A stretch of DNA of 64,000 nucleotides from Marsupella aquatica (GCA_973895155.1 OZ316898.1:1337827-1401826), one strand, 5' to 3'. Numbered from the stretch's first letter, positions 252-56,219 are shown. The notes: generated by a model from the sequence alone, not told the origin. Made by a program: numbers and translations.

Positions 252-3200
252 TTGGGCCACGTTTTCAAAATGGGGAGTTTCTCTCGAGGGGACAAGGTGT
301 GCCTCGTAATCGACGGAGTGGAAGTTGCTTGTGGGACGGTCCTCAAGGTTGACCCGGGTGACTCAATGCGTAATGTTGATTTGGGAAGTAATCGTATAGG
401 AGTTCTCATTGAGAAGTGCTATGAGGGATCACGGGAAATTCCTTACCCTTTGCCGCCGATCAGGACCCTGTTTGATGTTGTCAACTCTTGCATTATTTGG
501 GATGCCTCTTTTGCATATTTGAAGTCACAGTCAACTCCAACGACAACGAAAATGGATGCCTCCTGTTCTACAAAGGATACGGTTCCGGGTTTTGTACCAG
601 AGAAATCGTCGGTGGAAAGTTTTGGAGACTCGATTGTATCTGGCGATGAAGTCGAGGTCTGGATCGGCAATCAGATTGTGGCTCGTGGATTTGTGTTCAA
701 GACGAATCCCGATGAGACATGTCACAATGAAAGACTTGGCACTTCTAGGATTAGTGTGAAAATATGTGAAGTTTTTCAAGGAAGGGAGAGGTTACCCTTT
801 CCTCACAATGGAGCCGATACCGTTCAGGAAGCATTGGATACTTTTGTATTGTGGAATTTAAAGGATGTTACTCGGAGGAGTTCTTCCCGGGATATGCTAA
901 ACAACCTGTCCAGACAGGATGTTTTTTCAAATTATAATTTCAAGGATTATAGTTTGCGTTCTAATTGGATGACCGAGGAGGTGGAATTGTATGCTGAGGA
1001 TAATCGGACCAAAGTGGGGGTTGGCATCATCACAGTTCCTTTCGAGTCAGGTGCAATTGATGATGATGTTCTTGGACCAGATCACATTGGGGTTGCTGTC
1101 ACACGCGTGATTGACCCTCTATTTTTCCCAAATATCTCCCCAGGAGTGCCTGGTCTTGTTAGGTGGGCCGTCCGTTCACTTTTGCTGATATCAAGGGGTA
1201 TTTTTCTTCTGGATCTCATTGAAGAGGTTTCTCCGAAACCAATTATTGATGGTCGAGATCATCTAGAGGTAGATATGAAAGGTGACACTGAGTTTTTGAA
1301 GCGCCCGTATAATTTCATCAAGAGAACGAAGGTCAACCCAGATGAAAAAAGGAAGAAGCACTTGGAGTCTCGGGCGATACTGAAAATCACAGAGGAGGAA
1401 ATCGACTCCATCCAAAGAGAAGGTTGTTGTAAGTTGAAGTGTTGCCTCAGCATGCCGAGAGAAGACCTACAGGAGATAAGGAGAGAATACCATGGGATGT
1501 CAAGTGACAACAAAACCAGTCACATTCTCACTCTTTTTGGCTGTAGGGAGAAGGAAGTGGAGACAAAAGGATATTTTGTTGTAAGAAGTAGACTTGTTTG
1601 CAAGGGTGCATTTAGTAAAATGCATGGATTCAGCACTGCCAAGTATTATGATTACAAAAATCAATATGAAGCAGGTTGCACGGTTGGATTCCACGGAAAC
1701 AAGGGTTCACACAAGACACGGGGAAGCACCTTGCATGCTTGTGCTTTGTTGGAGTCCATTCTAACCCAAAACGGAGAACCCATGCCACATCTTCCCTATG
1801 GAGGGTCTCACGGGACTGACACGGTTGAGTACAGACTTCCATCTTGTTTCACGAAGAAAGAGATTTTTGAGGAGGTATACTCAAAAATGGAATTAGATGG
1901 CTACGTGAAGGTGAGTGAAAACACTATGTATAAACTCTGGAGTGAGTCCTTCATGAATTTTGACTTTCACAAGGGAAGTGCATTTGCAAAGTGTACACTT
2001 TGCACTGAGTTCAAAGATCAGTTGATGCGGGAGAAGAGAAAGAAAGAGCGTTTAGAGATTGAGGAAAGAAGAGCTCGCCATCTTCGTGAGCAAATGTCTA
2101 GGAGATATGTTTACTATGCTCATAGGGTTCTTGCGAAGAAGGATCCTGAGAACTATCTTTGCATTATACATGACAAGATGGACCAGGCCAAGACATGGAT
2201 CCCTAGGTTGGTCCCCACTCCTAAATCATTGTCTGGTAGTGGTCAACCGCTCCCCATTGCGCTCACTGGGATGTTGACCCATGGAAGGGATCCCGGAGTG
2301 TATGCTCACTTCAGTTTTACTGGGCTTTGGCCAGGAGATGCAGACTTCACAGTGACATCATTGACCAAGTGCCTTAGAGATCTGGAGGATTACAAGGGGG
2401 ACAAATCTGGAGACCTCCTTGAAGGATTATATTGGGCTGCAACGAGGCCAATTTTTCAATCTCTTTTGGACTTTGAAGCATTTCTCGCAGGTTACTTAGA
2501 ACCCAAAAAAGTCTCAATTGCTAGATTTCAAGGAGCTGAAGATGACCAAGACGACTTTGGTGTTGATCCCAAGGCTACGTCTACCTCTTTCAAACCATTG
2601 CCAAGGCACCTGACCTTGCAAATGGATAATTCAGGGAAAGATAACAAAAACCAGTACGTGATGGCATTTTGCAGTGAGCTTGTTAGTAGAGGGGTTTTTG
2701 AAACAGTGCAGATGTCGTTTCTCATGGTTGGTCACACCCATGAGGATGTCGATGCATTGTTTTCAAAAGTATCCAACCAAGTGAAGTACAAGGAGGTTTC
2801 TACCCTCTTGGGGTTGATGGCTGAGGTTTGGGAGTGTGAAAGCATTCATCCTGTGCCACGGTTGATCCAAGAGGTTGCAGCTTACAAAGAGTTTTTGAAA
2901 AATTTCAAGGTAAAAGACATAGAGGGTCACTCAAAACCAGTGGCATTTCTTTTCTCTATGAGAGATAATGTTCCAATATATCAATACAAAGCACATGTGA
3001 AACAACCTTGGTACCCTCCAACCGGAAGGTCCATTTGGAGAACTGATTCCAGCACCAATGCTCTCATTTTACCAGAAGGTCAACCGTTTGCAAAACCCAT
3101 CTCCGGGGATGTACGAGGCAAGGTTGAAGAAATCATCCCATTCCTTAATCGTTACATTGAGTTTTTGAAGAAGAGCTGTAAGGATGAGACCTCTACAGCA

Positions 3201-3959
3201 TATCGTGAGCGGTTTCCTTTGGTGAAATATTGGGAGATGGTGGTGCAAGTATTATCTGGGGAGCTTACAATTGAAGGGGAGGCAGAAATACAGTTAGCAT
3301 TGACATATGAATTCTGGCCAAAAACCAACCACGGAACTGGTTACAAGGTTAATAGTACAGGAACCTCTGAACCATTGGGGGAGCCTAGTAGTAGTACACA
3401 GAATCCACAAATGGTGGAGCTTCAGAATGAGTACCTGGAAGAGATGGAGGATCAAGCTGCAACATTTGTTGGTGCTCGACACGAGCGAGAACTTGCACGT
3501 TGGATTCCTCTGCAGGACATTCAAGAGGGTCACTTTGTATTTCTCCGTCCAGAGGATAAATGGGAAAAGAAGAATGGGAAAGAACGTTTCTGGTTGGTGA
3601 GAGCTTTGGGTGTTGTGGACCCAAACCATGAGGTTCCTTCAGAAGACTTGCAATGCAATGAGAATTCTCCTACTAGTACACGGTATGCTCCTATGTTCCA
3701 AGTGCAATGGTGGAGGCCTAAACATGTTAAGCATGATGCACCGGATCATATGCGATATTCACGTTGCTTTCAGACCACTAAGACTTGGGAGGTGGATCCT
3801 GGGTTTGACAGTGCCACTGAACGTTGGCAATTTGCTAATTCTGCTATGTATGGATTCAAGTCACGCTCTAGAGAAGAAAATATAATTGATAGAGGTTTGA
3901 CCATTCCCAAGAATGTTTTGAAAACACTCAAAACCTACATGGAAGGGATTGTTGAGTAA
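252..3959 (+). CDS. Intact DDE/DDD-type transposase (DUF7869 / Sola-like) with three N-terminal En/Spm Tnp1-like repeats
   Basis: Uninterrupted 1235-aa ORF. Cys/His motifs CKGAFSKMHG and FAKCTLC. Acidic core motifs IIHDKMDQ, LQMDNSGKDNKN and FLMVGHTHEDVDALFS. N-terminus has three copies of a VAxGxV...P...LG..RIxV.I...LPxP...W unit. Confidence 0.8.
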   Translation: MGHVFKMGSFSRGDKVCLVIDGVEVACGTVLKVDPGDSMRNVDLGSNRIGVLIEKCYEGSREIPYPLPPIRTLFDVVNSCIIWDASFAYLKSQSTPTTTKMDASCSTKDTVPGFVPEKSSVESFGDSIVSGDEVEVWIGNQIVARGFVFKTNPDETCHNERLGTSRISVKICEVFQGRERLPFPHNGADTVQEALDTFVLWNLKDVTRRSSSRDMLNNLSRQDVFSNYNFKDYSLRSNWMTEEVELYAEDNRTKVGVGIITVPFESGAIDDDVLGPDHIGVAVTRVIDPLFFPNISPGVPGLVRWAVRSLLLISRGIFLLDLIEEVSPKPIIDGRDHLEVDMKGDTEFLKRPYNFIKRTKVNPDEKRKKHLESRAILKITEEEIDSIQREGCCKLKCCLSMPREDLQEIRREYHGMSSDNKTSHILTLFGCREKEVETKGYFVVRSRLVCKGAFSKMHGFSTAKYYDYKNQYEAGCTVGFHGNKGSHKTRGSTLHACALLESILTQNGEPMPHLPYGGSHGTDTVEYRLPSCFTKKEIFEEVYSKMELDGYVKVSENTMYKLWSESFMNFDFHKGSAFAKCTLCTEFKDQLMREKRKKERLEIEERRARHLREQMSRRYVYYAHRVLAKKDPENYLCIIHDKMDQAKTWIPRLVPTPKSLSGSGQPLPIALTGMLTHGRDPGVYAHFSFTGLWPGDADFTVTSLTKCLRDLEDYKGDKSGDLLEGLYWAATRPIFQSLLDFEAFLAGYLEPKKVSIARFQGAEDDQDDFGVDPKATSTSFKPLPRHLTLQMDNSGKDNKNQYVMAFCSELVSRGVFETVQMSFLMVGHTHEDVDALFSKVSNQVKYKEVSTLLGLMAEVWECESIHPVPRLIQEVAAYKEFLKNFKVKDIEGHSKPVAFLFSMRDNVPIYQYKAHVKQPWYPPTGRSIWRTDSSTNALILPEGQPFAKPISGDVRGKVEEIIPFLNRYIEFLKKSCKDETSTAYRERFPLVKYWEMVVQVLSGELTIEGEAEIQLALTYEFWPKTNHGTGYKVNSTGTSEPLGEPSSSTQNPQMVELQNEYLEEMEDQAATFVGARHERELARWIPLQDIQEGHFVFLRPEDKWEKKNGKERFWLVRALGVVDPNHEVPSEDLQCNENSPTSTRYAPMFQVQWWRPKHVKHDAPDHMRYSRCFQTTKTWEVDPGFDSATERWQFANSAMYGFKSRSREENIIDRGLTIPKNVLKTLKTYMEGIVE

Positions 3960-19951: not shown

Positions 19952-22900
19952 AAGATTACACGCTCATGGCGTTTGTCAGAAATAGGGAATGAAATGTCAT
20001 GGGTACCAATTGATCGAAGTGTGTAGAGATGTACTTTGGAGTCGATCAAACCGATGCAGATCGAACATCTAGCTTAGAGGAAGGACGTCCCCGTCAGAAT
20101 TTAATTTGCTGTCAAAATCAGGTGACTTCATTTCCTTAGTTTCATTCATTCGCCATGTGCTTAGTGACCTCTCTGCAGGCACCAGTTGTCAAGAATACGT
20201 AAATTTTGTATAACTGTGTGTATGCAGGACTTCTAGCTGCTTGAAACAATTTTTCAAACCTGATTTACATTGCAAACACACATAAAGTCGTGGATAGCCG
20301 ACGATGTCCAACTGCCCATTTCGTAAGACATTTGAATACTTATTACATCAATCTCTAAGAGTCCATAATTGGCAGAAAGAAAATTGTTGTTATTTTTAAT
20401 TAATCATCATAACTATTTTACTCAAAATATGATAACAACAATAAAGATTTATTTTCCACAGTATGGTCCAGATAAAACTCGTATTGACTTGTGGGATTTG
20501 GGAATGTAGTCATATATAATAGAGGAGATATGGTGGAAAGAAACTGTAAGTGATAGTTTATCATAATAGATCTTTGAGCTCAGCTGTTTTCAAACATTCC
20601 CGGCGGCAACTTAGAGACTGTTCACTAGTGCCCTGTCTTGATTCTAGCCTTGAGTCGGTCGCTTCCTCTCAGACGTAAAAGTCTTGTCCGATTTGAAACA
20701 CATGACCAGGTCAAACAAGGAGATGAAGAAATCAACTGCCTAAGATTATACTTGGCATATTCTGAACGCTGGCAAACTGTCCGAGGAAGAATCTGATGGA
20801 ATGGTTGCTCTCTCGTTACTTTGCGATGAAAGCACGTGAATTGACGTATCGATCAGTGGCTAAATACTTGCCCGAACTGCGTGGGTGCGTCGGCATTGTC
20901 ATTCAAGCATACAACCGCAATTTAGTTAACTGCTTGCTAGTTTGCTCTGAAGAGGCCTGTCGTTGTCGTAAATTGAAATATTTGAGACGGATAGACATAC
21001 TGCACAGCTAAGTAAATCCATTTCTCGTTCAGTTGAGTGCAATTTTGCTGCAATCAGTGCAAGGAGGTCTGATCAATCTCAGGAATCACGGTGTTTGTAG
21101 GTGCCGACTTGCTCTCGAGTCACCTTCCGCTGAATCGGGAGCCTTTTCATCACGTGAACCACACGTGCATGGTGAACGGGTATAATCAAGTAGAATTTGT
21201 CATGCCGCGATTTTCTGACGTTGGCGCTTACGACGAGAATTAACATTCGGTGTCATCAGTCATCAGTTCGTCTCCCATGTGGCCATTTAGAGGAAGCGCA
21301 TGACAAGGTTTGACTGCGTTCATTTGACAGTAGTATGTTCTGTGGTGTGCTTGCGTCCTGATCCAATCGGATAGGCTCATCGGCTGCTGCCCGAGAAATT
21401 CTCGATGAGTTTTCTCGGGCTCTGAAAAATGCTGGTCCCGCCATTCATTGTTGCCTGTGTTGTATATTGCCGGCTGCCTTTTGCACATATAAATGGTGTA
21501 CCGTATGTCTTCACGTTTCTCAATGTTATGATGTGTAGATTCGCTGAAGGGTGGATCTTACTCAACTTTAGTTATCCCGGCCTGCCTCTTTCGTAGATGT
21601 AGTAATCATCATGGTGGCAAGTGAGGTTGTGGAAAACTTTGGCACAAACCCGTTCACAAAGTAAGTTCATCAAAGCCCTTGGAACACGCTAGACTTGACA
21701 CTTAGAAAACTTAAAGATCCCTCTTGAGTCTTGAGCTTATATACCAACTACCGGAAATGGGCAGGGAGCATATAATCATGGGACCGAAAAGGTTCAAAGG
21801 AACCATTGGCCTAAATCCCGAAAATGGTGCTACAATTTGGAGCTTCAGAAAATCAATCATGAATGTCACCGCCTTTAGGTCTCGTTCGTGAGTCAGAATC
21901 GACGTCATCCTTTCAGCAATCGCCATGTCTTTATGTCCGAATAGGTTGCAGTTCAATTTTTAGAGAGATCCTGTAAAGTGCCACTCCGTCAGGACTAGTA
22001 GGCCGCAATTTCATGGGACGGGTCAAACTAGTCCCGAGTCCTGCGCCAGCCGACGCGTCTCTCGGTGTGCTCTGGTGGTCTAGTTCTCCTATGGCACGCA
22101 CCCGACTCCGTGCCTGCCGGCAAAAAACAAAATCATGTTCACCAAATAGTACCAAGACCTGCACTGAGTTCTATCTTTGCAACCCTTCCTCTCCGACATT
22201 CCATGCAAAGTCACATGTTGCTGTGGGTAGTCTTGGGCTCCCCGGTTGTCTATCACTGGCTGTCTGGCTTTGGTTCATGAAAGACCGATTCTCCCTTTCT
22301 GTCATAACTATTCATCCCCGTCATCTTTTGGAACCATAGACTATTGGTCGTGCTGTTGGACGGTTTTGTGCCTCCTGCAAAATGAACGGTGTCGCATTGC
22401 TGACTCGTATTGAACTTTCTTACAGCTCATCCCTCGTCCGGTGCTACTGCTTTGTAGGTTTGGCCACGTCTAATTTTTGATATACTCAAATACATCGAGG
22501 CGTCACAATGTTGGCAACTACAACATTGCAAGCTCTTAAGTGACGACGACATAAACATAGCATCTCATCCAGTATCAAACTATCCATAAGTATCAGGTCA
22601 CAATGTTGAGTTCTGCAACACTGCAAGCTCTTCAGCTACTACCACATTAACATAATATCTCAACAAGTAACACAGGAGCAATATACATGAGTACTCACGT
22701 ACTCACGTCTCAGTTATGATCATGAGTATTAGACTAGTAGTATCCATATCCACAATTCAGTTTGATCAGTATCTATAATTTGTTTGTATCAGTGACTCAA
22801 GTTAATATCCACACTTAGCTTTTGATAAGTGATAAATGATGTTTCATGTCTCTAATATAATATTTTAATTAATATCAAAATAAATATATATATAAATATG

Positions 22901-26830: not shown

Positions 26831-27857
26831 TATGATGGGCTTTCTGCCCTTCATTAGCTTTCCTCTGGTCGCTATCATCATTACTTGGCAAGCTGGTGTC
26901 CGCTCGTGAGGGATCCAAAAAGAGCCCTCATAAATGAAGTAGACAAGCATGTGTCAACGTCCACACTCAACTCATAGTTTAATTTGTCAGGGGGCGGGTA
27001 TTTTGGGGATGACAAGAACTTTGCGATTAGCTACACAAAATCACGGCCGAGCAACATGGATGACGAGCACTAGCTGGGAGCAAGAGGTAGGGCTCCTTGT
27101 GATTTTGTGAAGTGATGGTGGTGGAAACCTACCTCTGCGTTCATTGTCTATCGGGCTGGAACAAGAGGAATCCCAGAAAATATGGTGAGCCGCGTACATA
27201 GAGGATTGAGAAACAAGCAGGGGAATGAGTTAGTCTGGAACAAAGCCAATCCACAAGTGAAGAACAAGAGCTCCTCACGTTGGGTTCTTGCTTGAGGTTG
27301 GTGGAGACATACGTGATTCACAAACAATCAACCTGAAAGCTAGGGCGACATTGCAAAGTACATCTGCTATAGCTAGTATGCAGATGGAGTCTCTTAGTGG
27401 AGACTCTGAATTCTTAATGGGGACTCTGAATTTTTTCATGCACAGCAACAATTTAAATTGATGTTGGAAAGGGACGTGCAATTATGAGCGAATCAAACCA
27501 CGAGGGGTCGATCCGCTGATACAAAGTTCTGCACTGTCCTAACAGTGTAACCTCACTGTCTGATGTTTGAGCTATTTGATCACAATAAAACTTACTCCAA
27601 CCTGATGTAGAACTGATCACAATCCGCAAAATCTAGTAGATTTAAGCTGGCCATTATCTTGCTCACTCAGTGCAATTGTTGTTCTCATCTCGTCTATATG
27701 CAACCGGTGCTTGATTTGCAACTTCTGCATCTGCATGCATCGCTTTTCAGTGTGACCATCATACCGTCTGTAGGTAGCAGTTTTTAGCTTTATTTCTTAT
27801 CAACACTACATACAACAGCTGGTTTAGTAATTTAAGCCATTACAGTACGTGTACCAT

Positions 27858-28033
27858 TGTCGTGACATATAGTATCGTAGCCATAGTGTATCGAAAACAT
27901 ACAAGTCACCGGCAAGGCATATGTGCAAGCTGCTAGCAACCAACATGCATAGAAAAAGTCCAATCACATTCACAAGTGCCAAGAAAAAGCAAATGAAGTG
28001 GTATGTACGTAGTGGAGGTGTAAACCTCTGTAT
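27858..28033 (-). repeat. Repeat B2 (176 bp), 3' terminus of the element
   Basis: Matches 28390-28565 with 2 substitutions by eye. Confidence 0.95.
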
Positions 28034-28387
28034 ATAAAAGGCGTAAGAGAATCGTACTGAAATCGAATCAAAAACCGGCGGGATGCCAAGATCGGCCGGG
28101 AGCATCTAACGAATCATTGTGTGAATCCCGTGTATGGAACCGACGAGCACTGTCTGAGCTCTGTCAACAGCGATTCAAGAAGAACTAAAAACCCACAAAG
28201 AAAGACATGCCCTAAGCAAGCAAAGTCCTGGCGTCACACTAACAAGCACATTTGCTTCAAGAACGGCCCAGTCTTGCTACAAGAACATGTCGCTAACTCA
28301 GGTAGTACACTAGCCCTAACTACATACCTAGCGGGCAGGCGAGGGACATGCCAATGTGCATAAGAGGCACTGTCCCTCAGCATGACA
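28034..28387 (-). repeat. Repeat A2 (354 bp)
   Basis: Matches 38105-38462 with about 8 substitutions and one 4-bp indel by eye. Confidence 0.95.
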
Positions 28388-28389
28388 GT

Positions 28390-28565
28390 TGTCGTGACAT
28401 ATAGTATCGTAGCCATAGTGTATCGAAAACATACAAGTCACCAGCAAGGCATATGTGCAAGCTGCTAGCAACCAACATGCATAGAAAAAGTCCAATCACA
28501 TTCACAAGTGCCAAGAAAAAGAAAATGAAGTGGTATGTACGTAGTGGAGGTGTAAACCTCTGTAT
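28390..28565 (-). repeat. Repeat B1 (176 bp), directly after the polypurine tract
   Basis: Second copy of B, separated from A2 by a 2-bp spacer (28388-28389). Confidence 0.95.
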
Positions 28566-28572
28566 CCCCCCC
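28566..28572 (-). other. Polypurine tract (G7 on the sense strand)
   Basis: A C7 run abuts the first base of B1, about 30 nt after the pol stop codon. Confidence 0.7.
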
Positions 28573-28604
28573 AGACCACAGCCAAAAGGAGGGCTGAAGA
28601 AAAT

Positions 28605-30100
28605 TCAGGTAGCACGTGGAGCACAGGAAGGGCAAAACCATAACCCTTCTGGCACCTAGGTAAGTTCAGGCCGAAGGCAGAAAAGATGGTACCCTCCATT
28701 GCAATTGTCACACAGCAGCATCTGGTCAGCATCATCAACTTGCAAACACACTTTGCAAGGGTAGTCCACAGGTGGAATCCAGGTAGAAGTCACAATGGTG
28801 GGATCCAGGTTAGGCAGATGACAAGGGGCGCAATTCTTGGCATTGTCAGCAATTGTGCGCCCATCTGCCCCTTGTAACTCTAGCACTCCAGACGGTCGAA
28901 TAGCTTTAACCCTGAGAATAGTACGACTGGTAGAGGTGTCGTTAGCTTGCCGTTGCAAGTACACAAAATCTCCCACTTCAAACTTCCTGACCTTTGGCTG
29001 AAAAGTGCCCCCTCGTGTGTGTGCATAACACAGTGTGTCCCTGTGCTGTGCGATGGCCAAATTCTCCATGGCCATGGGCATAACCCTCCTGAATAGGGCA
29101 GCCCTCTCAGAGATCACATCAGACCAAGTCACAGCTGAATCCAAGTCTACCACCTGAAGCATGTGAGCAGCAATAGCAGAAGGTGGAACTGGGTGACGAC
29201 CAAACAACAAGAAGTAGGGAGAAAAGTTAGACAGTGATGCATGTCTGGACATCCTATACCCCATGGCAATGTAGGGTAAGGCCAGGTCCCAATCCTCCTT
29301 GTTTTTGGTGAGGCAAATCTTCCGGAGACCCTTCTTGCATGTCTGAACCATGCGCTCTGCCAAGCCATCTGCCTGTGGGTGATCTCGTGATGTTCGGCGA
29401 TGATCAATGAGGGCCTGATCAAGCAGCTCCTGGAACTCTCCTCTAAACTCTGAGCCCTGGTCAGTGAGACATTCTGCACAAGCTCCAAACTGACTGAGAA
29501 CTTGTTGCAGGAATGCCTGGCTGGTGCTATGAGAGGTCTTATCCGGCAATGCCACAAGTTCTATCCACTTGAATGGAGAAATGCTCTATCATGATCATGA
29601 TGTAGAGATTACCCCGAGACGTGAGGGGTAATTCTCTAGCCAAATCACATGACCAGCGATAAAACATGCCCTGAATAGGGAGTGGATGAAGTGTGGGTTG
29701 CCGAGATGTGAAAGAAGTCCTCACCCTATCACACTGTTCACACCAGGCAATAACATCTCGAACCTGGCCATGCATGTCTCTCCAATGATAATGAGGGACC
29801 AAGAGGCTGTAAGTCCTCTTAACGCCTAAATGACCAAGCTCAGAATGTACCTTACGGATAAGGCCAACCCTCTCATGAATGGGTGGAACCACCACTTCCC
29901 TGTCTGGCAAGCAGCGCACGAGATGATCTCCCTTCCACGAGTAACGCTTGGACCTTTGCTGAATTCGGTCTCTCTGGGCAGCAGTAACATGTATGGGGTA
30001 CTCCCCATGCTGCAAAAATCTCAGAGTGTCGTTGTCCTCCCATATGTCCACCACAGGTTGGTCAACAACGTAGCATGGCAGCAAAGCAAGATAGGTAGAT
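28605..30100 (-). pseudogene. Integrase (HHCC + DDE) with a C-terminal PHD finger
   Basis: HSELGHLG...CEQC, WSCDL, TDQGSEF, HPQADGLAERMVQ, PYFLLFG, then CKVC...[31 protein letters not shown] (C4HC3). Frameshift near 29550 and an in-frame stop at 28656-28658. Confidence 0.9.
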
Positions 30101-30169
30101 GCATGAAATGTAGGTAGGATGGAAACCTGGTCAAAATCCTGCCGTGCATCTGAGGAATCATCAGAGGCA

Positions 30170-31560
30170 ATCAAAGGGCTGCGGGACATAGTGTCAGCAT
30201 TTTGATGTGTCACACCAGGCCTATGAATTATCTCAAAATCATACTCCCGGAGTATGAGCGCCCAACGAGCAAGCTTGCCAGTAAGCTTTCGTTGGTCATC
30301 AACCACTTCAAGGGCTGATGGTCGGTATAGAGAACAAACCTGGTCCCATAGAGGTAGGGCCTGTAATGTATGATAGCCCACACAACAGCAAGGCATTCAC
30401 CCTCATAAGAAGAATAATGACTCTCTGCCTGATTGTTGCTCCTGGATGCATAGGCAATGACGTACTCTTTACCTTCCTCATCATGTTGGCCCAGAATGGC
30501 ACCAATCCCAAGGGCACTCTAATCTGTGTGTAACACAAAGACCTTGCTGAAATCAGGTCTTCTCAGCACCGGGTATTCTGAGAGCTTCTCCTTCAAAGTG
30601 GCAAATGCTGCCTCAGCATCTGTACTCCATGTCCAAGTCACATTCTTTTTCAACAAAGCAGACAATGGGTGTGCAATGGTACTGAAATCTTTGATGTAGA
30701 TCCGGTAGTAATTGCACAACCCAATAAAACTCCTCAAAGTGTGAACATCGGTAGGAGTGGGCATTTCCAAGATGGATACCACCTTGGCCCAGTGAGCCAT
30801 GGTTCCATTTGGAAGAATGCGATGCCCAAGATATACTACTGATCTGAAAGCAAATTCACACTTCTTGGGGTGTATCTTTAGGTTCACCTTCTTAAGCCTC
30901 ATGAATAGCTCCTCAAGGTCAAGTAGATGCTGGTCAAATCCTTTGCTGTGGACCAACACATCATCAATGTAGCATTTCAGAAACTCAGCACCTTGAAGAA
31001 CCTGGTCCATGACTCTTTGAAAGAATATGGGCGCATTCTTCAAGCCAAATGGCATCACCAACCACTCCTATAGTTGGTTACTACCATGGAAAGCTGTTTT
31101 CTTGCGGTCCTTTGCAAGCAGCAAAATCTGGTTAAAGCCTTGCCTTAGATCCACAAGAGTGAAGATGTTTGAGTCTCCAATGCTGTCAAATAGCTCCTCT
31201 GACCGTGGCATGGGGTACCTGTCTTGGGGTGTGACCAGGTTTAGTGGCCTATAGTCCCCACACATGCGCTTCTCTATCCACAATCCATTGGAATCCTTCT
31301 TTGCTGGCATCACTGTAGTTGTTGCAAAATCTGATGTAGATGGCTGAATAAGACCAGCTTCATAGAGCTCTTGGCATCTCTCATCCACCAGCTGCCACTC
31401 ATGCTTACTCAAACGGTGTCTCCGCCTGAAGATAGGTGTTTCATCAGCCAACTCAATGGAGAACTGCATAGTCTTGCACTTACCCAAGTCCTTCATAGAG
31501 AAAGCAAACACATTCTCATGCTTGAGGAGAAAATTCAGCAACTGGTCCTTCTGTCTTTTA
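30170..31560 (-). pseudogene. Reverse transcriptase and RNase H (gypsy type)
   Basis: RMCGDYRPLN, DLRQGFNQI, KTAF, VMPFGLKNAP, CYIDDVLV, RSFIGLCNYYR, LARWALILREYDFEIIHRPG..H.NAD. Contains a stop and frameshifts. Confidence 0.92.
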
Positions 31561-31954
31561 CTCAGGTGGTTGCCCATGATGAATGTGTAGTTGGCAACAC
31601 TAGGAATAGGACCTGATGTACTCGTGCTTGAAGAGCCAGAAGTGCCAGCCTCTCCACTGTCCAAGCTGCTAGCATGCTGCTGATAATGTGATGAGGCCTC
31701 TCCAAGGCCTGTTGTACTTGTTGCTCTGGTTTGATCCACACCATGAAACTCAGAAATAATGTCAGCCACATTACAAGGGACCTCCCCCCCAACACTTGGA
31801 CTGAAGCGGTGAGTGTTGAATAGAGGTAAGTGCACCTGGTCTGGATGCCATGTAGCAGCACCATGGAGTGGTAGGGCTGGAACTCCTGATGCTGGATGAA
31901 TGTACATCTGAAAAAGGATGCAAGTGACCAAAAGCCAAGTGAGAGCATTAAGAT

Positions 31955-32870
31955 CCATTACCCTGCCAAGTAAAGCATTCCTGGCCAGCCTGGTGATCTT
32001 GGTGTGACCTGTAGTACCAGGTTGGAAGCCCATAGCCCGTTCTCTCTCCTCAGGACTAGGTTCATCCCATGTACCAGTAGAATGTCGATAAACCAGGCCA
32101 GGACCATAACCCTGAAAAACATGTGCACCTGGAAAGGACACAAATGTAGGCCAAGCAGCACGGGGCTGTCCAATGGTATTGGCTGGATACCAAGGTGCTG
32201 GCTCTTGCCGTGTAACTGGTTGGCAAGAACTATCAGGATCCAAAATCTGGTCCACTGTGAGGTTAGTGTCCCTGGATGTGTGGTGAAGAGCTAACTCCAG
32301 CAAGGAAGGTGGTGCAAGGTTAGTCCAAAAGTTACGAAGACGATGTGCATAAGAACCACAGTGCACTGCATCAATGAGAAGGGGTGGTCCCAAGTAGTGT
32401 TGGACCACACTGAAATCCTCTTTGACTTGTGGACGCTGGTCAAACTGAGATGGAGTATTCTCAATGCTATAACCAACAGCAAGATAAAGGGATTGAGCCA
32501 GGTGAGAATCTGAACCAATGCTGTGAAAAGGCCAGAACGAGAGTCATGCAATCCAGCACCATGACCAGCAGCTGAAAACCCTTGGCATTCCCAACCAGCT
32601 ATGATCAAATCAAGGGCACCAAGAAGGGTTAAGTGTCGGTGCTGGACAAGCTGGATATCTGGAGGGAAGAAAGAAAATGCAGACTTCCATGCACTATGTG
32701 GAAACTACTGGGGAAATCGTTCTGAAAATTCCAGCAGACGGGATTTAGCCACTTGCCTTGCACCTGGATCAATGTCCACGTAGATGTACTGCTTCACCAC
32801 CATGCCAGGTTGTAGGAGAGCTTCCAGGCCTATAGAAATGCCACCAAAAAGCACAAGCAATGTAAGGCCA
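31955..32870 (-). pseudogene. C5-cytosine DNA methyltransferase domain (DNMT3-like) inside pol
   Basis: Ordered motifs: I LVLFGGISIG; II YVDID; IV IIAGWECQGFS followed by GLHDSRSGLF; VI IENT; VIII AHRLRNFWTN; IX ERERAMGF; X LLGRVMD. One stop (32705) and one frameshift (~32490). Confidence 0.88.
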
Positions 32871-33219
32871 TCCGGAGCAGGAGTCCATGTAACTGGTGCT
32901 CTCAAGATTGGGGCTATTGGCTGTCCATTGTGCTGCCCAAGGTCTTCAAACTTGCACAATGCAGCCACCAAAGGTCCATGGGCTGCTTGGAGCCGTTGTA
33001 CCACCTATGGTTGATGATCCACGTTGCTGGAAAGTGCTACTATACGTGCAGCAGCATGTGCAGTAGCCACCTCATCATCATCCTCCTCAATCCAATCCTG
33101 CAATGGGTGGTTGACATAGGTAGCTGTGTGTACTGCTTTCAACACACAGTGGTGAGCCATAGGTGTATGGGCACCATGCAAATCAAGGGGAATGTAGCCC
33201 AAGTGTGAGCCATCAGTAT

Positions 33220-33600
33220 GCCAATCAACTCTGTAGTATGCATGCTCATGCCAGTTATCAATGGTAAAACCTGGTGGGAACAAAGTCTCCTGGCCAATGA
33301 GCACATCATACGTAGTGGCATTGGTAACCAAACATCTGACTGGGAAATGCAATTCCTGATCTGTACCTCCATTAAAAGTGAGAGTGAGTAAAGTAGAACT
33401 CTCACCCAGCACATCCTCCACAGTGCCACTAGCAGTCGAATGTGCCACCTGGATTGCTGTAAATGATCAGTCAGCAGTCCCATCTTCTTGGCAAACTGAA
33501 TGCCCAAGATCACTGGTTGAGCGCCTGTGTCTAGCATGACCACCTGAGGAGTGTGACCCTCCAACTTGACTGCTGAATTCCTGTTATCAACAATGGCAAT
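33220..33600 (-). pseudogene. Retropepsin-type aspartic protease
   Basis: VMLDTGAQPVILG and, after a frameshift near 33440, TASG...YDVLIG. Confidence 0.85.
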
Positions 33601-33625
33601 GGTGGTGGAAACTAAAGTCCTGTCA

Positions 33626-35720
33626 CTAGACACCACTTTTGTGATGAGGTACCTTGTGAAGGGAGTTAGTGGCCACGGTCTTCCCACTCAACAACATAGC
33701 CAGGAAAGATGGAGCAGCATGACCAGAATCAAGTGTAGCTCTGGTCACACAATCAGCAGCAATCGGTACTGGGGCAGCTAAACTAGTGGAAACATGTAAA
33801 GGAGAAGAAGAAGGTCCAGTATGTACATGAGATTGGACCTCCAAAACCGGTGTCACAGGGGCTGATGAAGAATGCAGTGAACCCTCTAGCGCTCTGATGA
33901 CAGCTCTAGCATCCAGCTGTAAATCATGGCAACTGAAAAGTGGAGTTGTAAGAATCCTTTGTGCCATACCGGAGGTGAAATGCTCAAGCAGCTCAGGAGA
34001 AACAACTCCCTGTGAAATGTCAGCAGCACCTGGTGGTGGAATGGATGTGGCTGCAGCTCCCTCCCCCCTCGCCAACAAGGTACGCTCTTCAGCAAGTGTG
34101 AGGGGCTGAAAAGATTGGGGCATGACAGCCCGAGCTCCCTTGGCTCTAGTCATAGGACTGGCAGCAAGACCATCAGCCTGTACAATGCGGCGTGTGGGAG
34201 CAATACGGGTGGCAGCACTGGCCTGCTGGTAAGCAAAATAGGAAGGGCAGAATGAATCTGAAAATTCTGCTGTAAGGCCAGGCTGTGGAGCAGAGGACAG
34301 CACACACTCACCCATATGAGCATCAAATGGCAAGCCATAGAAAGAGCGGGGTAGAGGTGCTGAACTGTCAGTGGTGCCTGGGCCAGGGATGGGTTGCACG
34401 TGACCAGCCGATTGAGAAGGACCAGCAGAGGCAGTTGACTTGCCTTTGATGTTGGCAAGTTGGGCACGTAGGGACTCAACCTCATGAGTCAGAGACTGGA
34501 GTTGAGTTGCTTGTGCGTTGTGAGTCTCCTTCTGAACTGGTTGCTTCTGTTGCTGCTTGGGCGGTTTGTTGGCACTGGATGTTTTGCCACTGGAAGGAGG
34601 AGCAGTTGATGCAGTAGGAGCCCTCCTAGCTGGTGGGGGAGTGGAAGTAGGAGCAGGAGGAGGGGCCTGCTGTCGTAGCTGCTTCCTCTCTGGGAATTTG
34701 GCAAAACAAATTGCCTCCAAGTGACCCACTTTCCCGCAAAAATCATAAGATAGGTCCTCAGCAACAATATCACAATCATTAGCCTTGTGATTGGGGTTAC
34801 CACAGTAGTTGCAAGATGGCAGCATGAAAGCAGCATGGGCTGGCTTGGTCTTAGAACCATACTGTGGCACACGGGAAGGGGTGGCCAGTGTAGGGGCAGC
34901 AGCCTGGTACCTGGATCGCGGTGGATGTGCAATACTGGCCTCATAATGTGCATGGGCCAACTCAAGTTTCTCAGCAGTGTCATAGACATTGAGCAGGGTG
35001 TAGCTATCTCCAAACTCTAAGAATACTTGCTGCAACACTTGCGAATGGAGAGCTGGTGTGCCCTCCAATGCGCGAAGATAGCGATGAGCAGCTTCTAGGT
35101 CAGTGATGCTCTGGGTGTCCTCCTTCAGCTTGAGAAGCCAACGATACATCATCTTCAATGTTTCATCGCGCTGCCTCACAAAGGTGGCCAACTGCATGAT
35201 TTTATCAGCACTCTTGATTGGGAATTCCAATTCAAGAACCTGGAAAAACTCAGCCACTGGACCAGCAAAGGCAGGGGAATCAATGGTGGGAGAAATGCCT
35301 GATGTAGCCTGTGCCAAGATAGTGGGAGTAACTGGCGCAGTGGTAGGAACTGGAGTAGGAGGGGAAGTGGCAGGAGCAGCAGCATGGGCTGCAATGGCAT
35401 TTTGTAATGCCAATTGTGAGGCAGCCGCAATTGCACTGGCATAGGCAGGGTTAGGCAATTGTGTGACAGCAAGCAGCCGTTGAGAGTGTTGTTCATACAC
35501 ATCCAAAGCCTCGTGGTGCACATACCTGGCGAGCTGCTTAAATGCAAAAGCATTTGTGAAATTGCTGTCGTACTTCAACTCCAATTCGTAAACGACAGTG
35601 TAGAAAGTGGATTTGAACTCACATAAAGAAACAGTGCCTGGCTGCCCGCTGAAGCGCTCAATGCGGCCAGATGAGTGGCTGGCGTCCATGTTGTATGTTG
35701 GTGAAGCAGGAACAACCATG
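33626..35720 (-). CDS. Gag-like protein with two zinc knuckles
   Basis: Long open frame with IERFSG near the N-terminus, QRDETL capsid-like motif, CNYCGNPNHKANDC and (Y)DFCGKVGHLEAIC, then a P/Q-rich linker and coiled coil. Start codon uncertain. Confidence 0.85.
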
Positions 35721-36143
35721 GATGCAGAAGGGGTAAAGGTAGAGAAGCGATAGCAGGCTTCAGGGTAGTGGGAAAGCGACCGCCAAATGTAGCAGAAGGA
35801 TTGCGTGGTGTGGGTGCTGCTGCTGTCTACTGGCGTCGTCAAAATTGCCGAGACTCCAATGAAATTGGCACCAATGGTCGTGGATCACTCCGTAAATGGT
35901 ACCTGGGTGTCGGTGGCGATGTGCTGCTACCTTCGGGCTCCTCTGCTGACATGCTATGTTGTGCTTGCCTGATCGACGGTATGATGTGTATGCCGGGCCC
36001 TTAACCTTATGTAGATGACATGTGGTGGCAGCAAAGAAATTGGGGAAATATGGGCCCTATGCAGCAGTAGTTGAATATGTGAACCGGGCCCATCTTAAGT
36101 GTATACACATTTGGGGCCCATTGTGGCCCCGAAAACTGCAGTC

Positions 36144-36781
36144 GGCCTCATTCACAATTGGAGGACCCAAAAGGAACGTCACACTCAAAAGTGACCATAG
36201 TTTATTATGCTTTAGGACATCATTTGTAAGGTGTAATGAGATGATATGCAAAATTTGATGTACTATACTTAATAAATATCCTGTAGGTTGGTAACATTCA
36301 TTAAACTATCTAGCATTTGAAACTTTGAACCTTTCCTTATATGTCCTTCAAAGATCGATAAAAGGACTTGTCACGCAACGAGTCACATCATTTCAGGACT
36401 CGAAAAGACTCTAAAACTTGCATTTTAGACAATGAAATTTTACCAAGGCATGCATACTAATATAATAATCTTATATTTCAAAACTCAAATATTGACACAC
36501 ACTAAACCTTTATGTACAGGACAAAAATAATCAGTAATTTTGGCTTATTTAGGGCCATCAATAATAGGATCCCTTAAAAAAGTTAAAAACTTGATTTATC
36601 TACATGGTGAGGTAGGTTACACCATGTAAAATATTCTTGTGAAAAAATTAAACTTAAATGTCTTGAGATAAAATCATGATAAAGCTTTTTCCATGTTACA
36701 AAAGTCATTTTTCACTAAAAAAGCATGTTTTTGAGTCCTGAAAGTGGTTCCTGTAAGGTACACCCAATTGTGAATGAGGCC
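36144..36781. mobile_element. Non-autonomous DNA transposon (MITE) with 18-bp TIR and 4-bp TSD, nested in the retroelement leader
   Basis: Perfect TIR GGCCTCATTCACAATTGG / CCAATTGTGAATGAGGCC. AGTC duplicated at 36140-36143 and 36782-36785. AT-rich interior within GC-rich flanks. Confidence 0.9.
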
Positions 36782-38092
36782 AGTCGGACCGGTCGAGTGT
36801 GTATACACACTTGTGGCACACGGCCCTATGCAGCGCTAGTTGGACGGCTATGGAAAAGTCGAGGAGTCACTATGGCCGGCGAGGGAAAGAAACGGGAGGG
36901 CACGATGCCCTATGTACATACAGGCTGCGGAGCACAAAAGGCATAAGGAGGAAAAGGCAAGACGCAGCATGGCAAGGGCGAAAAGAAAGAGATGGCAAAA
37001 AGAAAAGCATCGGGCCCCCATGGAGGGGCTACAAACTCCCCCTCCTCTCCTGCAATGTAATAATTTGGGCTCGTGCCCTAGCAAAAGCACTCCCGAGAAG
37101 GGAGTCGACTTAACTCCCCTCCCCCTTGTTAATGCTGAATGGGGCCGTGTGCCTTCTCCCTCGCATGCTTGTGGCAGGGCTTCTCCCCACTTAATGCTAC
37201 CTAGGGCTTGGTGCCCTCTCACTCGCTGTCGCTCCTCCTCCTCTTTGCTTTCGCTTGTGCTATCCTCCTTTAATGCTGTATAGGGGCTTCGTGCCCAACT
37301 CTCGCTTCACCTCCCCTCACCCTGCTTTATTCTCCATAGGGCCTCGTGCCCTCGGCTCTCACTCCCTCTCCCTTGTTTTAATTCCTCATAGGGCTTCGTG
37401 CCCTCCTTTTGCTTCCCCCTCTCCTGCGTGGCTGGTGCTCGCCCTCTCCCTCCTCTTTAATGCTGAAATGGGGCCTGGCAGCATGACTCCCGAGAGAGAG
37501 AGAGTCGTATGTACTCCCCCCCTCCTTACTACTTCAGAGGCGCGAAGCTGGCTCGGCAGCCGTGGCTGGGAGAGACAAAAAAAACATTTGAGGGGCCCTG
37601 AAGGGTCGACGCGAGCAGGGGCGCAGCTCCCTATGTACAGACTGCGAAGAGCCGGGGGTGGTAGCAAAAAATGGGCACACGGCCCTATACACTGATAGTC
37701 GGGAGGTGGCAGGGAGGGACCACGGCCGGAAACTGCAATAATCGGGCCCCAATCATTGCGCTACGGCCGGGGCAAGTTCACCAGCAGTGTGTGGCTGGGA
37801 AAATACCGAAAATGGCCCGAAAAGGTCGAACGTGCACGAGGGCGTAGCGCCCTATGCAGCAGCCGGAAGCAAGTTTGCAACAGCAGGTCGGCAATCGACG
37901 GAGGGGTCGCGGATGCACCCGGGAAGGAAAAATTGGGTTCCAATAGAAGCATTATGTGTATACATAACGTGACATTAAACCCATAATTTCAACCAGTCCC
38001 TGCTCAAAGAAATTGCATCAACTTCGACGGGAATTGTCTAAACCGACACGAGCAGCTAAGAAGCACGTCTCCGATTTCCTTCCCCTTACCAC

Positions 38093-38106
38093 AGTTCTTC
38101 TTGAAT
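38093..38106 (-). other. Putative self-priming primer-binding site
   Basis: agttcttcttgaat (38093-38106), abutting and overlapping the inner end of A1, is the exact reverse complement of attcaagaagaact (38248-38261) inside A1. No TGG-starting tRNA PBS at the boundary. Confidence 0.75.
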
Positions 38107-38462
38107 AAAAGGCGTAAGAGAAACAATCGTACTGAAATCGAATCAAAAACCGGGGGGATGCCAAGATCGGCCGGGAGCATCTAACGAATCACTGTGTGAA
38201 TCCCGTGTACGGAACCAACGAGCACTGTCTGAGCTCTGTCAACAGCGATTCAAGAAGAACTAAAAACCCACAAAGAAAGACATGCCCTAAGCAAGCAAAG
38301 TCCCGGCGTCACACTAACAAGCACATTTGCTTCAAGAACGGCCCAGACTTGCTACAAGAACATGTCGCTAACTCAGGTAGTACACTAGCCCTAACTACAT
38401 ACCTAGCGGGCAGGCGAGGGACATGCCGATGTGCATAAGAGGCACTGTCCCTCGGCATGACA
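38105..38462 (-). repeat. Repeat A1 (358 bp), 5' terminus of the element
   Basis: Matches 28034-28387 and begins TGTCATG on the sense strand. No B copy is adjacent. Confidence 0.95.
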
Positions 38463-39119
38463 CCATGCATACCTTGAAAGTAACCCCTTTTCCAGGTCCC
38501 GGTTCCAAGTTTTACTAGTGCAATGTCCCGAAGACAAACCTTAGTAGCATTAGTAACGCTATAGGCTCCTCATAACAATCACAATGAACAGCGATCGATA
38601 AATCACAATGTCGATCAGGTGAATGCCAACTCCAGAAAGAAGATTGCTTATAAGAGCCGTGGGATAGACTCAACGTCGGACATTTTATGATCATCTCAGT
38701 CTTATTCTATTGGAGGACTCAAGGAGATAGTGGACATTCTAAGTCAAAGTGCAGCGATTGCTCTCCTCTCCAAGTTTCTGAACACTGAATCCTATCTACC
38801 GTATGCAGATCATAACGTATATAAACAAGGTATACCTCAACGAATAATAAATAGATGTTAATAGTTTTTCAACCTTTTCCATGTAGAATACTTTTTGATA
38901 TTTGAGGTCAATTTGCTTGTGCATGCATGTACCTTTCAATTTCATTCTTGACATAATTCAACTAGAATGCATCACTGCATCAAAATGCAATTAGAATCGG
39001 ACACAAGTTATCTGAAACATCCACTTTTGATTGGCTCTCACCCTAAATGACAAAATAGCAGAAAAGGATATATTTCTTGGATTTCCAATTTTATTCTCAC
39101 ACATGCATCGTGGCAAAAT

Positions 39120-39260
39120 TATATAGTTTTGAAATTGAAGCGATAAATTTATCTGATGTTGGTATTGCAAAAGTGGTTCCTTCATATGGAAGTTGCAATT
39201 TTGAAATTGAAGCGATAAATTTATCTGATGTTGGTATTGCGAAAAGTTTTCTTCATATGG
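39120..39260. repeat. ~71-bp tandem duplication
   Basis: ttttgaaattgaagcgataaatttatctgatgttggtattgc...cttcatatgga x2. Confidence 0.85.
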
Positions 39261-54595: not shown

Positions 54596-56219
54596 ATGAA
54601 GATCACGTCCTACGAATCCACGCTGGTCAAGCCTGAGATTCCCACCCTGCCGCAAGTTTTATCTTGCTCGGCTTGCGACCATTTTGCCCGTCCGGTTCAC
54701 GTCCGCACCCTCTATTTCTTCGGTGAACAAAGCCCTGGAGCCAACAAGGATGCCCCCCAGGTTCTGAAGAATGCTTTGAGTAAGCTGCTGGTCACCTTTT
54801 ACCCCAACGCCGGAAGGGTGAGGCACAAGAGGGATGGATCTGGAGATCTGGAGATCGACTGTAATGATGCAGGTGTTGTCTTCATCAAAGCTTCTGTTGA
54901 TATTTCCATCGAGGACTTGGGAGGCTTTCAGCCAAACCCTCTCTTCGACAAGCTATCCCCTTATGCAGATCACTCCTTGCCCATTGAGGAACAACCTGCA
55001 CAGCTCTTGCAGGTAGCCTTTGTGAATTGGCCTCTGCTCTTTCTCTTTCTGTAGACGCGTCTCCTTTCGTCAATTAGTAGGTGGGAGGCTCTGAAATTCA
55101 AGATCCCCAGGTCATTCGGACAAATGCCATGAATCGAGGTGAACATTCGTATCGTTTCCGGTTCCCTGGATTGTAGAGATTATGGGTAAACTAATGAGGC
55201 TGGATATAGAGAGATGAAGGTTGGTGAAGCGTCGAAATAATTGGACCTTGCTGAACAACTTGCCTCATTCAATGTCAGACTTCCAATTAAACTCTTAATG
55301 TTGATGTGAATGGCAGGTGACAATATTCGCGTGTGGAGGATTCTCACTAGGAATGGCTCTGCACCATACAATAGCAGATGGAGTATCCGCCAACAACTTC
55401 ATTGTCTCATGGACCGAGGTTGTTCTTGGGAAGCCCATTTCTGTGAAGCCAATATTCGACCACACTCTGTTGAATTCCGCAGGAGCGCCAGTGCCCCCTT
55501 CGCCCCCAGCGGAGTTGATATTACGCCCAAAGGGCGTAGGTCCCGTGGCAGCTGCGAACAGACCTGTGACGAAGCGGGTCTTCACATTCACCCCCGACCA
55601 GTTGAAGAAAATTAAGGAAGAGGCCAACAGCGAGCAGGTAGCTGGGAACGATAGACCCTTCTCTACGTTCGAGGCTCTATCAGCTCACACTTGGCTGAGT
55701 ATCATCAGAGCCAAAGGCTTGGATGCGAGCGAGGAAGTGAAGTTCTTCACCACCTTGGATGCGCGAAAAAGGTTGAAGCCGGAGCTACCGGACGGGTATT
55801 ATGGAAACGCTATCATCTTCACATCGAAGAAGACCACCGCAGGAGAAATTTTGAGTAAAACGTTGTCATTTTCTGCTAGTTTAGTGAGAGAAGCTGTGGC
55901 CAAAATGACGAACGAGAATATGAGGTCGATGATCGCCTGGGCCGACGCTCAAACGGAATCCGTCATGATTGCCATCAACACTGCAGGGAATGACGTTTCT
56001 TCAGCTGGATGGTTCAGGATGTCTTTCTACGACACTGACTTTGGTTACGGCAAGGCCTTGTTCGCTGGACCGGCCGACAACCCCTACAACGGTGTGGTGC
56101 TCATGCTTCCCGGGCACATCGGTCCCGGATCAATTAACATTTTCATCAATCTATACACCGAACACATGGAGAAGCTGGAGAATGATGCGGACTTCCTTAT
56201 GCACAAGATTATTGGATAA
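54596..56219 (+). CDS. BAHD acyl-CoA acyltransferase (HCT/HHT-like superfamily), 2 exons: 54596-55012 and 55317-56219
   Basis: LVTFYPNAGR, IDCNDAGV.F, catalytic HTIAD (HxxxD) and DFGYG (DFGWG variant). The intron falls at the conserved Q|VT position with GT-AG. Confidence 0.95.

Follow-up and report, generated by a model that had tools for sequence, protein, structure and literature searches.

A stretch of 64,000 nt from the genome of Marsupella aquatica (GCA_973895155.1 OZ316898.1:1337827-1401826), hereafter the window, carries on its minus strand a retrotransposon of the Ty3/gypsy type with split direct repeats. One repeat segment (A1) stands alone at the 5' end, and the coding region is followed at the 3' end by B1, a two-nucleotide spacer (NN), A2 and B2. 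This element is probably a degenerate copy of a streptophyte lineage in which the ends used by the integrase do not lie at the ends of the long terminal repeat (LTR), and in which the reverse transcript, its own ends having been joined, is cut at an attachment (att) site inside the LTR. The split-repeat layout is family-wide and not a peculiarity of a single copy.

Read in the sense of the element, the order is ATGG, A1, the coding region (gag, protease, C5 cytosine DNA methyltransferase (DNMT), reverse transcriptase (RT), RNase H, integrase (IN) and PHD finger), G7, B1, AC, A2, B2 and again ATGG (Table 1). A1 and A2 were 96.6% identical, with a single 4-nt indel, and B1 and B2 were 98.9% identical. 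The outer ends are TGTCATG and CACGACA. The joint between A2 and B2 reads CCTTTTAT|ATACAGAGG, which is exactly the end of A1 followed by the start of B1. A1 would hold the promoter and R-U5. The coordinates and junctions that the first-pass annotation had given for A1, B1, A2, B2 and the CCAT duplication were correct to the base. No further copy of A or B was found across the 64-kb window, and a search of the window for tandem repeats found none.

Table 1. Features of the element in the window, listed in the sense of the element (5' to 3').
Feature	Position in the window	Strand	Remarks
Target-site duplication, 5' side	38463..38466	-	Sense ATGG; identical 4 nt at both ends
A1, sole repeat of the 5' end	38105..38462	-	First bases TGTCATG (integrase TG end), last ..CCTTTTAT (U5 end)
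AGTTCTTCTTGA within A1	38250..38261	-	A positions 202-213; predicted 5' end of the transcript and self-primer
Primer-binding site TCAAGAAGAACT	38093..38104	-	Adjoins the end of A1; 12-nt complementarity; putative Tf1-like self-priming
Leader	35690..38092	-	About 2.4 kb, no recognisable open reading frame or domain; gag start near 35689
gag piece	33626..35842	-	CCHC zinc knuckle (PF00098); homologues 52-69% identical
Aspartic protease piece	33139..33687	-	Asp_protease_2 below curated cut-off; collinear with intact relative P0146
DNMT module within pol	31902..32872	-	PF00145 on 32291-32608; frameshift near 32500
RT and RNase H	30282..31610	-	RVT_1 (1.4e-19), RT_RNaseH_2; stop or frameshift near 31065
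Integrase	28656..30396	-	H2C2 zinc finger, rve core, C-terminal PHD finger; rve frameshift near 29555-29570
Polypurine tract G7	28566..28572	-	Adjoins the start of B1
B1	28390..28565	-	Start of the LTR defined by reverse transcription; U3 start ATACAGAGG, end ..GTCACGACA (integrase CA end)
Internal att site GTCACGACA-AC-TGTCATG	28381..28398	-	Integrase ends back to back; 2-nt spacer 28389-28388
A2	28034..28387	-	Remainder of the 3' LTR (U3 end, R, U5)
A2/B2 joint TTAT|ATAC	28030..28037	-	U5 end blunt-fused to U3 start
B2, terminal copy of B	27858..28033	-	Source of the right-hand CA end
Target-site duplication, 3' side	27854..27857	-	Sense ATGG (plus strand CCAT)

Related insertions were collected by scanning JGI metagenome contigs with an alignment of the IN-PHD region. 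This yielded 80 loci, in which the A and B segments were mapped by BLAST and from which duplicates were removed by means of their flanks. After de-duplication there were about 31 unique insertions with the order IN, polypurine tract (PPT), B, NN, A, B, and about 17 in which B passes directly into the flank (IN-PPT-B-flank), on plant contigs in the metagenomes. Among named species, the IN-PHD piece of the window matched the liverwort Calypogeia fissa with 85-88% identity and Klebsormidium nitens with 51%. The Calypogeia locus L007 reads G7|B1|GC|A2|B2, with the att site ..GTCACGATA-GC-TGTCATGCG.., and the Klebsormidium locus L008 reads purine tract|B1 ..GCGACA-GC-TGTCACGCC.. A2|B2 ..GCGACA|flank. 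A plant contig recurring in several metagenomes (L011-L013) contains a complete A1-int-B1-GC-A2-B2 copy flanked by ACCT. In the metagenome relatives B starts with ATACATGAG and ends with ..GTCACGACA, A starts with TGTCATGCCC, and a run of G7-G10 adjoins B1 in nearly every one of the 45 listed related loci of class I, being interrupted in a few (e.g. L054). The spacer of the att site was exactly 2 nt long in 30 of 30 unique related copies (GC 13, AC 9, GT 4, AT 3, TC 1). It was ancestrally GC, giving the palindrome ACAGCTGT, and the other variants are transition derivatives.

Complete copies start with TGTCATG and end with ..ACA, and in nine of the 11 they are bordered by a perfect 4-bp duplication, different in each case: ATGG in the window copy, ACCT in L011, GTGT in L054, CCTT in L075, ACAA in L080, TTTA in L082 and ATCC in L089, all with the A-int-B-NN-A-B layout, and CATG in L070 and TCCC in L078, both A-int-B. 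In L034 three of the four positions match, and L037 lacks a duplication. The chance of a perfect 4-bp duplication is 1 in 256 per copy; with about 31 independent recurrences and perfect duplications in nine of 11 copies, the arrangement is far beyond chance. The first-pass annotation had proposed a search for independent copies, and three taxa were found to share the A-int-B-NN-A-B order, the TGTCATG start, the ..ACA end and differing 4-bp duplications; it had also predicted A-int-B copies, and such copies were found, with perfect duplications in two. Each of the sequence tests that it had suggested turned out in favour of its reading.

By prior expectation, the arrangement might be a one-off: a conventional gypsy element that was rearranged, recombined between tandem LTRs or was misassembled; and the window itself contains a single copy. 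The probability of such an origin is now close to nil, as about 31 independent insertions, differing in their flanks and duplications and drawn from three taxa and several assemblies, have the layout in common to the base, and as the PPT and the primer-binding site (PBS) adjoin B and A, not the TG and CA ends. The same recurrence removes the concern, raised in the first-pass annotation, that the copy might be unique or misassembled at 28034-28565. Two other readings of the repeats were also rejected: an LTR of conventional A-B form whose TG and CA ends adjoin PBS and PPT, since these adjoin A and B instead, and an A-int-B copy inserted beside a solo A-B, since only 2 nt separate B1 from A2 and the duplication borders the unit as a whole.

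The spacer variants GC, AC, GT and AT, as well as many common LTR polymorphisms, are C/T or G/A transitions without phylogenetic signal. This pattern would fit a heavy loss of methylated cytosines by deamination once the copies had been inserted.

The open reading frame (ORF) of the element is interrupted by several frameshifts and stops. The broken pieces were searched individually against Pfam and by tblastn of intact relatives, with the sequences as found and not in consensus, ancestral or repaired versions. The integrase ends in a PHD finger and not, as in chromoviruses, in a chromodomain. A relative from Calypogeia fissa (P0015), 87% identical across the IN-PHD piece, had as best solved matches Ty3 Gag-Pol (7q5b) and the integrase of prototype foamy virus (PFV), with D, D and E aligned. 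The intact relative P0146 shows the same domain order in a single ORF of 2188 aa. A C5 DNA methyltransferase domain is carried by the intact relatives P0146, P0140 and P0138, and the module of the window aligned by tblastn to the DNMT parts of P0001, P0140 and P0146. The features of Ty3/gypsy elements were thus largely recovered, with gag upstream, pol in the order PR-RT-RNaseH-IN (PR, protease), an integrase with H2C2 and rve, TG..CA ends and a short duplication; two complete identical terminal LTRs with the integrase ends outermost were not, the 5' end having A alone and the 3' end B-NN-A-B.

The same repeat arrangement, A1-internal-B1A2B2, is known as the split direct repeats of PAT and Ngaro (PMC4157794). 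In PAT/Ngaro/TOC elements, too, it implies a replicative form with the repeat halves joined, and the layout by itself would favour a PAT/Ngaro/DIRS-like mobilisation by a tyrosine recombinase, encoded in the element or acting in trans. Those elements encode a tyrosine recombinase, whereas the lineage of the window has a DDE integrase, TG..CA ends, 4-bp duplications, gag and a protease. No match to a tyrosine recombinase (Phage_integrase) domain was obtained in the element ORFs of at least 50-80 aa, nor in the relatives, intact ones included. The ends and the 4-bp stagger point to a DDE integrase, whose signature they are, and not to a tyrosine recombinase, and the DDE triad is kept in the relatives. 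To our knowledge, PAT/Ngaro/TOC elements (DIRS order) produce no target-site duplication on insertion. Mobilisation by a tyrosine recombinase is therefore very improbable, and the enzyme is, as the first-pass annotation had it, a DDE integrase, here of Ty3-like affinity; the profile search it had suggested for a tyrosine recombinase gave none encoded in the element ORFs.

Reverse transcription appears to delimit the LTR differently from the integrase. Immediately downstream of A1 lie 12 nt, TCAAGAAGAACT, that are perfectly complementary to AGTTCTTCTTGA at A positions 202-213. The metagenome family has AATTCTAGAAAAACT as its PBS region and AGTTTTTCTAGAATT as the matching stretch in A; as the differences between the two families are matched on the two sides of the helix, the pairing has been conserved. 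The complement extends to 15 nt in L034 and L075 and to 13 nt in L082, and is shorter in more decayed copies. When the RNA from the AGTTCTTCTTGA point to the PBS was folded, the helix closed both the minimum-free-energy and the centroid structures (z = -4.3 for L075), a result which, with the boundaries of the fold chosen by the analyst, speaks only for the absence of a competitor to the PBS helix.

In Tf1, as described by Levin and colleagues, the transcript serves as its own primer (self-priming of the Tf1/sushi type): its 5' end pairs with the PBS that follows U5. The element resembles Tf1/sushi elements in that its PBS lies directly after U5 and is complementary, over 12-15 nt, to an LTR stretch taken as the start of the transcript. 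It differs from Tf1, which has conventional LTRs and a chromodomain integrase, in its PHD-ending integrase, and its transcript start is predicted. The PBS would accordingly be a self-primer of the Tf1 type, with the transcription start and R within A and the end of A as the U5 end. Since the PBS lies directly after A and the PPT adjoins B, the LTR in the sense of reverse transcription is B-NN-A, and the linear product [B-NN-A]-int-[B-NN-A] follows from it. The B-NN-A unit bounded by PPT and PBS starts with ATAC and ends with TAT or AAT. The first-pass annotation had likewise taken B+A as the unit bounded by the PPT and the primer site, to which the self-priming PBS after A and the PPT before B lend support.

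The A2/B2 joint has the properties expected of a structure made at each insertion. Before the PBS, A1 ends in ..TT(C/T)AAT in all complete copies. Before B2, by contrast, the end of A2 in 28 unique copies was ..TTCAAT in 10, ..TTCA in 10, ..TTCAATT in three and of another kind in five. The ..TTCA state corresponds to a loss of 2 nt or to a join on a shared AT, and the other states include a 6-nt loss in L034; in L029/L031, A2 is shortened to 92 nt at the joint. In Calypogeia L007, the sole difference between the two A|B units, over 577 nt, is an indel located exactly at the joint. On a tree of the 28 unique copies the state of the joint required 16 changes against a shuffled mean of 14.4, and on a tree of the integrase region only, 15 changes against 14.35 (p = 0.8). 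On the latter tree 43% of the common LTR polymorphisms, indels included, cluster at p ≤ 0.05. These polymorphisms replaced the NN spacer as the positive control for phylogenetic signal, the spacer having given none because its variants are transitions that arose after insertion. As the state of the joint is variable and without signal on the tree, it is not copied from the parent and is made anew at each insertion. The joint behaves as if cDNA termini had been newly fused, the U5 end varying slightly and the U3 start remaining constant. Within most copies the divergence of A1 from A2 is about equal to that of B1 from B2, as is expected if both pairs arise at insertion.

From these data the following cycle is proposed. 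The transcript's own 5' end would prime on the PBS after A, the G-run before B would act as PPT, and reverse transcription would give the linear DNA [B-NN-A]-internal-[B-NN-A]. The termini of this molecule (ATAC... and ...AAT/TAT) would not be substrates of the integrase, whose TG and CA ends lie back to back within each LTR as the palindrome ..ACA-GC-TGT... The U5 and U3 termini would then be joined, either in a 2-LTR circle or by host end-joining of the outer ends in a complex held by the integrase. At the att site of the upstream LTR the integrase would nick both strands 3' of CA. The nicks, 2 bp apart, would amount to a double-strand break; each end would carry a recessed CA-OH with a 5' overhang of 2 nt and, to judge by this geometry, would resemble a 3'-processed end. 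Insertion with a 4-bp stagger would leave the product A-internal-B-NN-A|B. Joining of U5 to U3, a cut at the upstream att site and the 4-bp stagger together lead to exactly the layout observed. A-internal-B-NN-A|B alone would retain a downstream R (in A2) and hence be able to replicate again, and A-internal-B copies would be dead-end by-products or the result of later B1xB2 deletions. The sequences establish the anatomy, the duplications, the primer sites, the new formation of the joint, the intact DDE triad of relatives and the lack of an encoded tyrosine recombinase; we infer in this scheme the physical form of the joined intermediate, the integrase cleavage at the att site and the transcription start.

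Several points weigh against the proposed cycle. No circle or joined intermediate was observed, the evidence consisting of integrated and degenerate copies. All copies found are old and broken, with a longest ORF of 623 aa in Calypogeia L007 and of no more than 466 aa among the metagenome loci, and most of the relatives come from short-read metagenome assemblies. Complementarity is the one line of evidence that places the transcription start inside A. About one third of the copies (about 17 unique ones) are A-int-B, which may represent a primary insertion of a linear or one-LTR form or a B1xB2 deletion. Finally, a closed 2-LTR circle has two identical att sites, so that A-B-NN-A-int-B copies would also be expected, and these were found in none of 16 5' ends, all of which have A only (12 complete copies together with L001, L002/3, L004 and L005). 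The simple circle model is therefore incomplete, and a strong bias in the choice of the att site or another route to the joint is needed. Of the 2-LTR circle model put forward in the first-pass annotation, the joined ends, the internal att site and the DDE enzyme are retained; the circle itself is conjectural, and its ABA-int-B product is absent from the 16 5' ends sampled. Three further points speak in favour of that interpretation: the self-priming type of PBS that follows A, the new formation of the A2/B2 joint at each insertion and the fixed 2-nt length of the att spacer.

There is a modest chance that the anatomy and the internal att site are as described and that no closed circle is formed. 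In one route (a), the integrase would act on linear cDNA, cutting the upstream LTR at its att site and holding both att ends, and host end-joining would close U5 to U3 before or after strand transfer. In another (b), the RT would jump end to end from U5 to U3, giving a three-LTR linear molecule of which the integrase uses the outermost TG and CA. The absence of A-B-NN-A-int-B among the 16 5' ends is predicted by route (b) and not by a symmetric circle. The outcomes at the joint, which are blunt, with a 2-nt overlap, +1, or resection-like (L034, L029/L031), are the pattern of end-joining or template switching, and A-int-B copies with perfect duplications (L070, L078) fit two att sites on a linear molecule. 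Route (a), however, has the same symmetry as the circle, except where one LTR cannot be used, and we know of no precedent for route (b) among LTR elements, which counts against it. Integrated copies would look the same under either route and under the circle.

It is improbable that A-int-B is the normal product, derived from the two internal att sites of a linear or one-LTR cDNA, with A-int-B-NN-A-B as a secondary, non-replicative form. A-int-B accounts for about one third of the insertions, two with perfect duplications, and would on that count be a candidate; A-int-B-NN-A-B is nevertheless the majority form and conserved from Klebsormidium to liverworts, and within copies A1/A2 and B1/B2 are of the same age. 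Moreover, an A-int-B copy has no downstream R, so that its transcript would be unable to complete the first-strand transfer and the lineage could not persist. Assembly collapse as the origin of the A-int-B copies is unlikely, as they are as old and broken as the other copies.

The joined-end reading, preferred here, was compared with what is known of related systems. The first-pass annotation knew of no described gypsy lineage of this kind. The layout had in fact been stated in 2018 for KnitGypsy-Dnmt3 of Klebsormidium, described in a figure legend as having a DIRS-like repeat arrangement and Gypsy domains (de Mendoza et al. 2018, PMC5890265, Fig. 4c), and this report does not give ends, duplications, primer sites or a mechanism. 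No other publication taking up the repeat layout of KnitGypsy-Dnmt3 was found in the literature searched. The element of the window shares with it a C5 DNA methyltransferase in a Gypsy-type pol and the A-coding-B-A-B repeats. KnitGypsy-Dnmt3 is algal, whereas the window copy is from a land plant and has its nearest integrase relatives in Calypogeia fissa (85-88%). The K. nitens sequence KFL_010570010, a candidate for one of the published KnitGypsy-Dnmt3 copies, is 51% identical over IN-PHD and is followed by PPT-B-GC-A-B. The element of the window is a liverwort-type member of the DNMT-carrying gypsy lineage, and its integration route, if confirmed, would be a new variant of LTR retrotransposition.

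With conventional Ty3/gypsy elements (Metaviridae) the lineage shares the domain order, the H2C2-DDE integrase, the PPT, the TG..CA ends and the short duplication; those elements have two complete terminal LTRs, whereas here the integrase ends lie in the middle of the LTR in the sense of reverse transcription. For the cut proposed at the att site there is a parallel in retroviruses. Palindromic 2-LTR junctions are cut by the integrases of PFV and HIV-1 (PMC1180852, PMC1905944), and integration can draw on 2-LTR circles (PMC4372172). There, as proposed here, a retroviral-type integrase cuts an internal CA..TG palindrome to give 3'-processed ends fit for integration. In PFV and HIV-1, however, the palindrome is formed by ligation of LTR ends alone, has a 4-nt spacer and belongs to an accessory route. 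In the lineage of the window, by comparison, the palindrome is permanent in each LTR and has a 2-nt spacer, the A|B ligation joint is not the cut site, and internal cleavage appears to be obligatory.

In the textbook view, LTR retrotransposons and retroviruses insert linear cDNA by its ends, and 2-LTR circles count as by-products. Dozens of independent insertions with the hallmarks of a DDE integrase, from a charophyte alga to liverworts, can on their sequences only be read as products of joined cDNA ends cut internally. If this is true, the lineage is a natural system with obligatory integrase cleavage of an internal palindrome, a reaction debated for PFV and HIV-1, and a supposed dead-end form is a required substrate of integration. 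The A1-B1A2B2 architecture would then be independent of a tyrosine recombinase, which bears on the origins of DIRS-like elements, and the lineage could plausibly represent a stepping stone towards the tyrosine-recombinase retroelements, or a convergent twin of them. The broadest claim, to which we assign about even chances, is that in an ancient gypsy lineage of streptophytes replication passes obligatorily through a reverse transcript whose U5 and U3 ends have been joined, as a 2-LTR circle or an equivalent form, and which a DDE integrase re-opens at a palindromic att site built into the LTR, and that this lineage is such a stepping stone or twin. LTR-finding software that expects two full LTRs will miss or misannotate the family in bryophyte and algal genomes.

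Some contigs contributed to part of the comparison. The gag-anchored contigs L001-L005 all stop inside the element and were used for 5' ends alone, and the contigs of P0146 (L009) and P0140 (L010) are too short to include repeats. In Calypogeia, nested insertions interrupt B1 of L006, the 3' end of which is lost; the A1 of L007 was searched for and not found; and L095, of a family with 57% identity, had no repeats within 10 kb on either side.

Other observations concern the coding region and its surroundings in the relatives. In the intact related polyprotein P0140 (L010:1368-8867, 2499 aa) the DNMT module lies between RNase H and integrase (RT-RH-DNMT-IN-PHD), whereas in the window it lies between protease and RT, so that two positions of the module occur within the lineage. 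The leader from PBS to gag, at 2.4 kb, is unusually long, and no ORF of at least 50 aa on either strand of 35690-38092 gave a Pfam match. A kinase gene model of Sphagnum troendelagicum (P0013) is 70% identical to the gag ORF across 8% of it, a similarity suggesting that the gene model has taken in a piece of the family and that the family occurs in mosses as well. At L005:4680-6584, some 0.8 kb upstream of the A1 of a family copy, lies an ORF whose DDE_1 transposase domain marks it as a neighbouring, unrelated DNA transposon.

Irregular repeat structures were also recorded. An isolated A|B unit at L007:1660-2236 (minus strand), in opposite orientation and 99% identical to the neighbouring A2-B2, has no target duplication, and its upstream side abuts another repeat (2234-3040, matching 20208-21014). 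In both L067 and L088 an insertion of about 0.8-1 kb splits B1, after which a full B-A-B follows. In L035 and L036/L038, B1 and the GC spacer are followed by unrelated sequence in place of A2; these copies may have been broken or targeted precisely at the att site.

Elsewhere in the window, two 46-nt direct repeats, 98% identical and spaced by 72 nt, lie at 39127-39244, about 660 nt outside the 5' end of the element. An uninterrupted ORF of 1235 aa at 252-3959 (plus strand) has a strong DUF7869 match (2.7e-44) and probably belongs to another mobile element or to a transposase-like gene. An ORF of 300 aa at 55317-56219 (plus strand) matches plant BAHD acyltransferases (PF02458, 2.5e-55, profile positions 139-433), which indicates a land plant as the source, and is probably one exon of a host gene.

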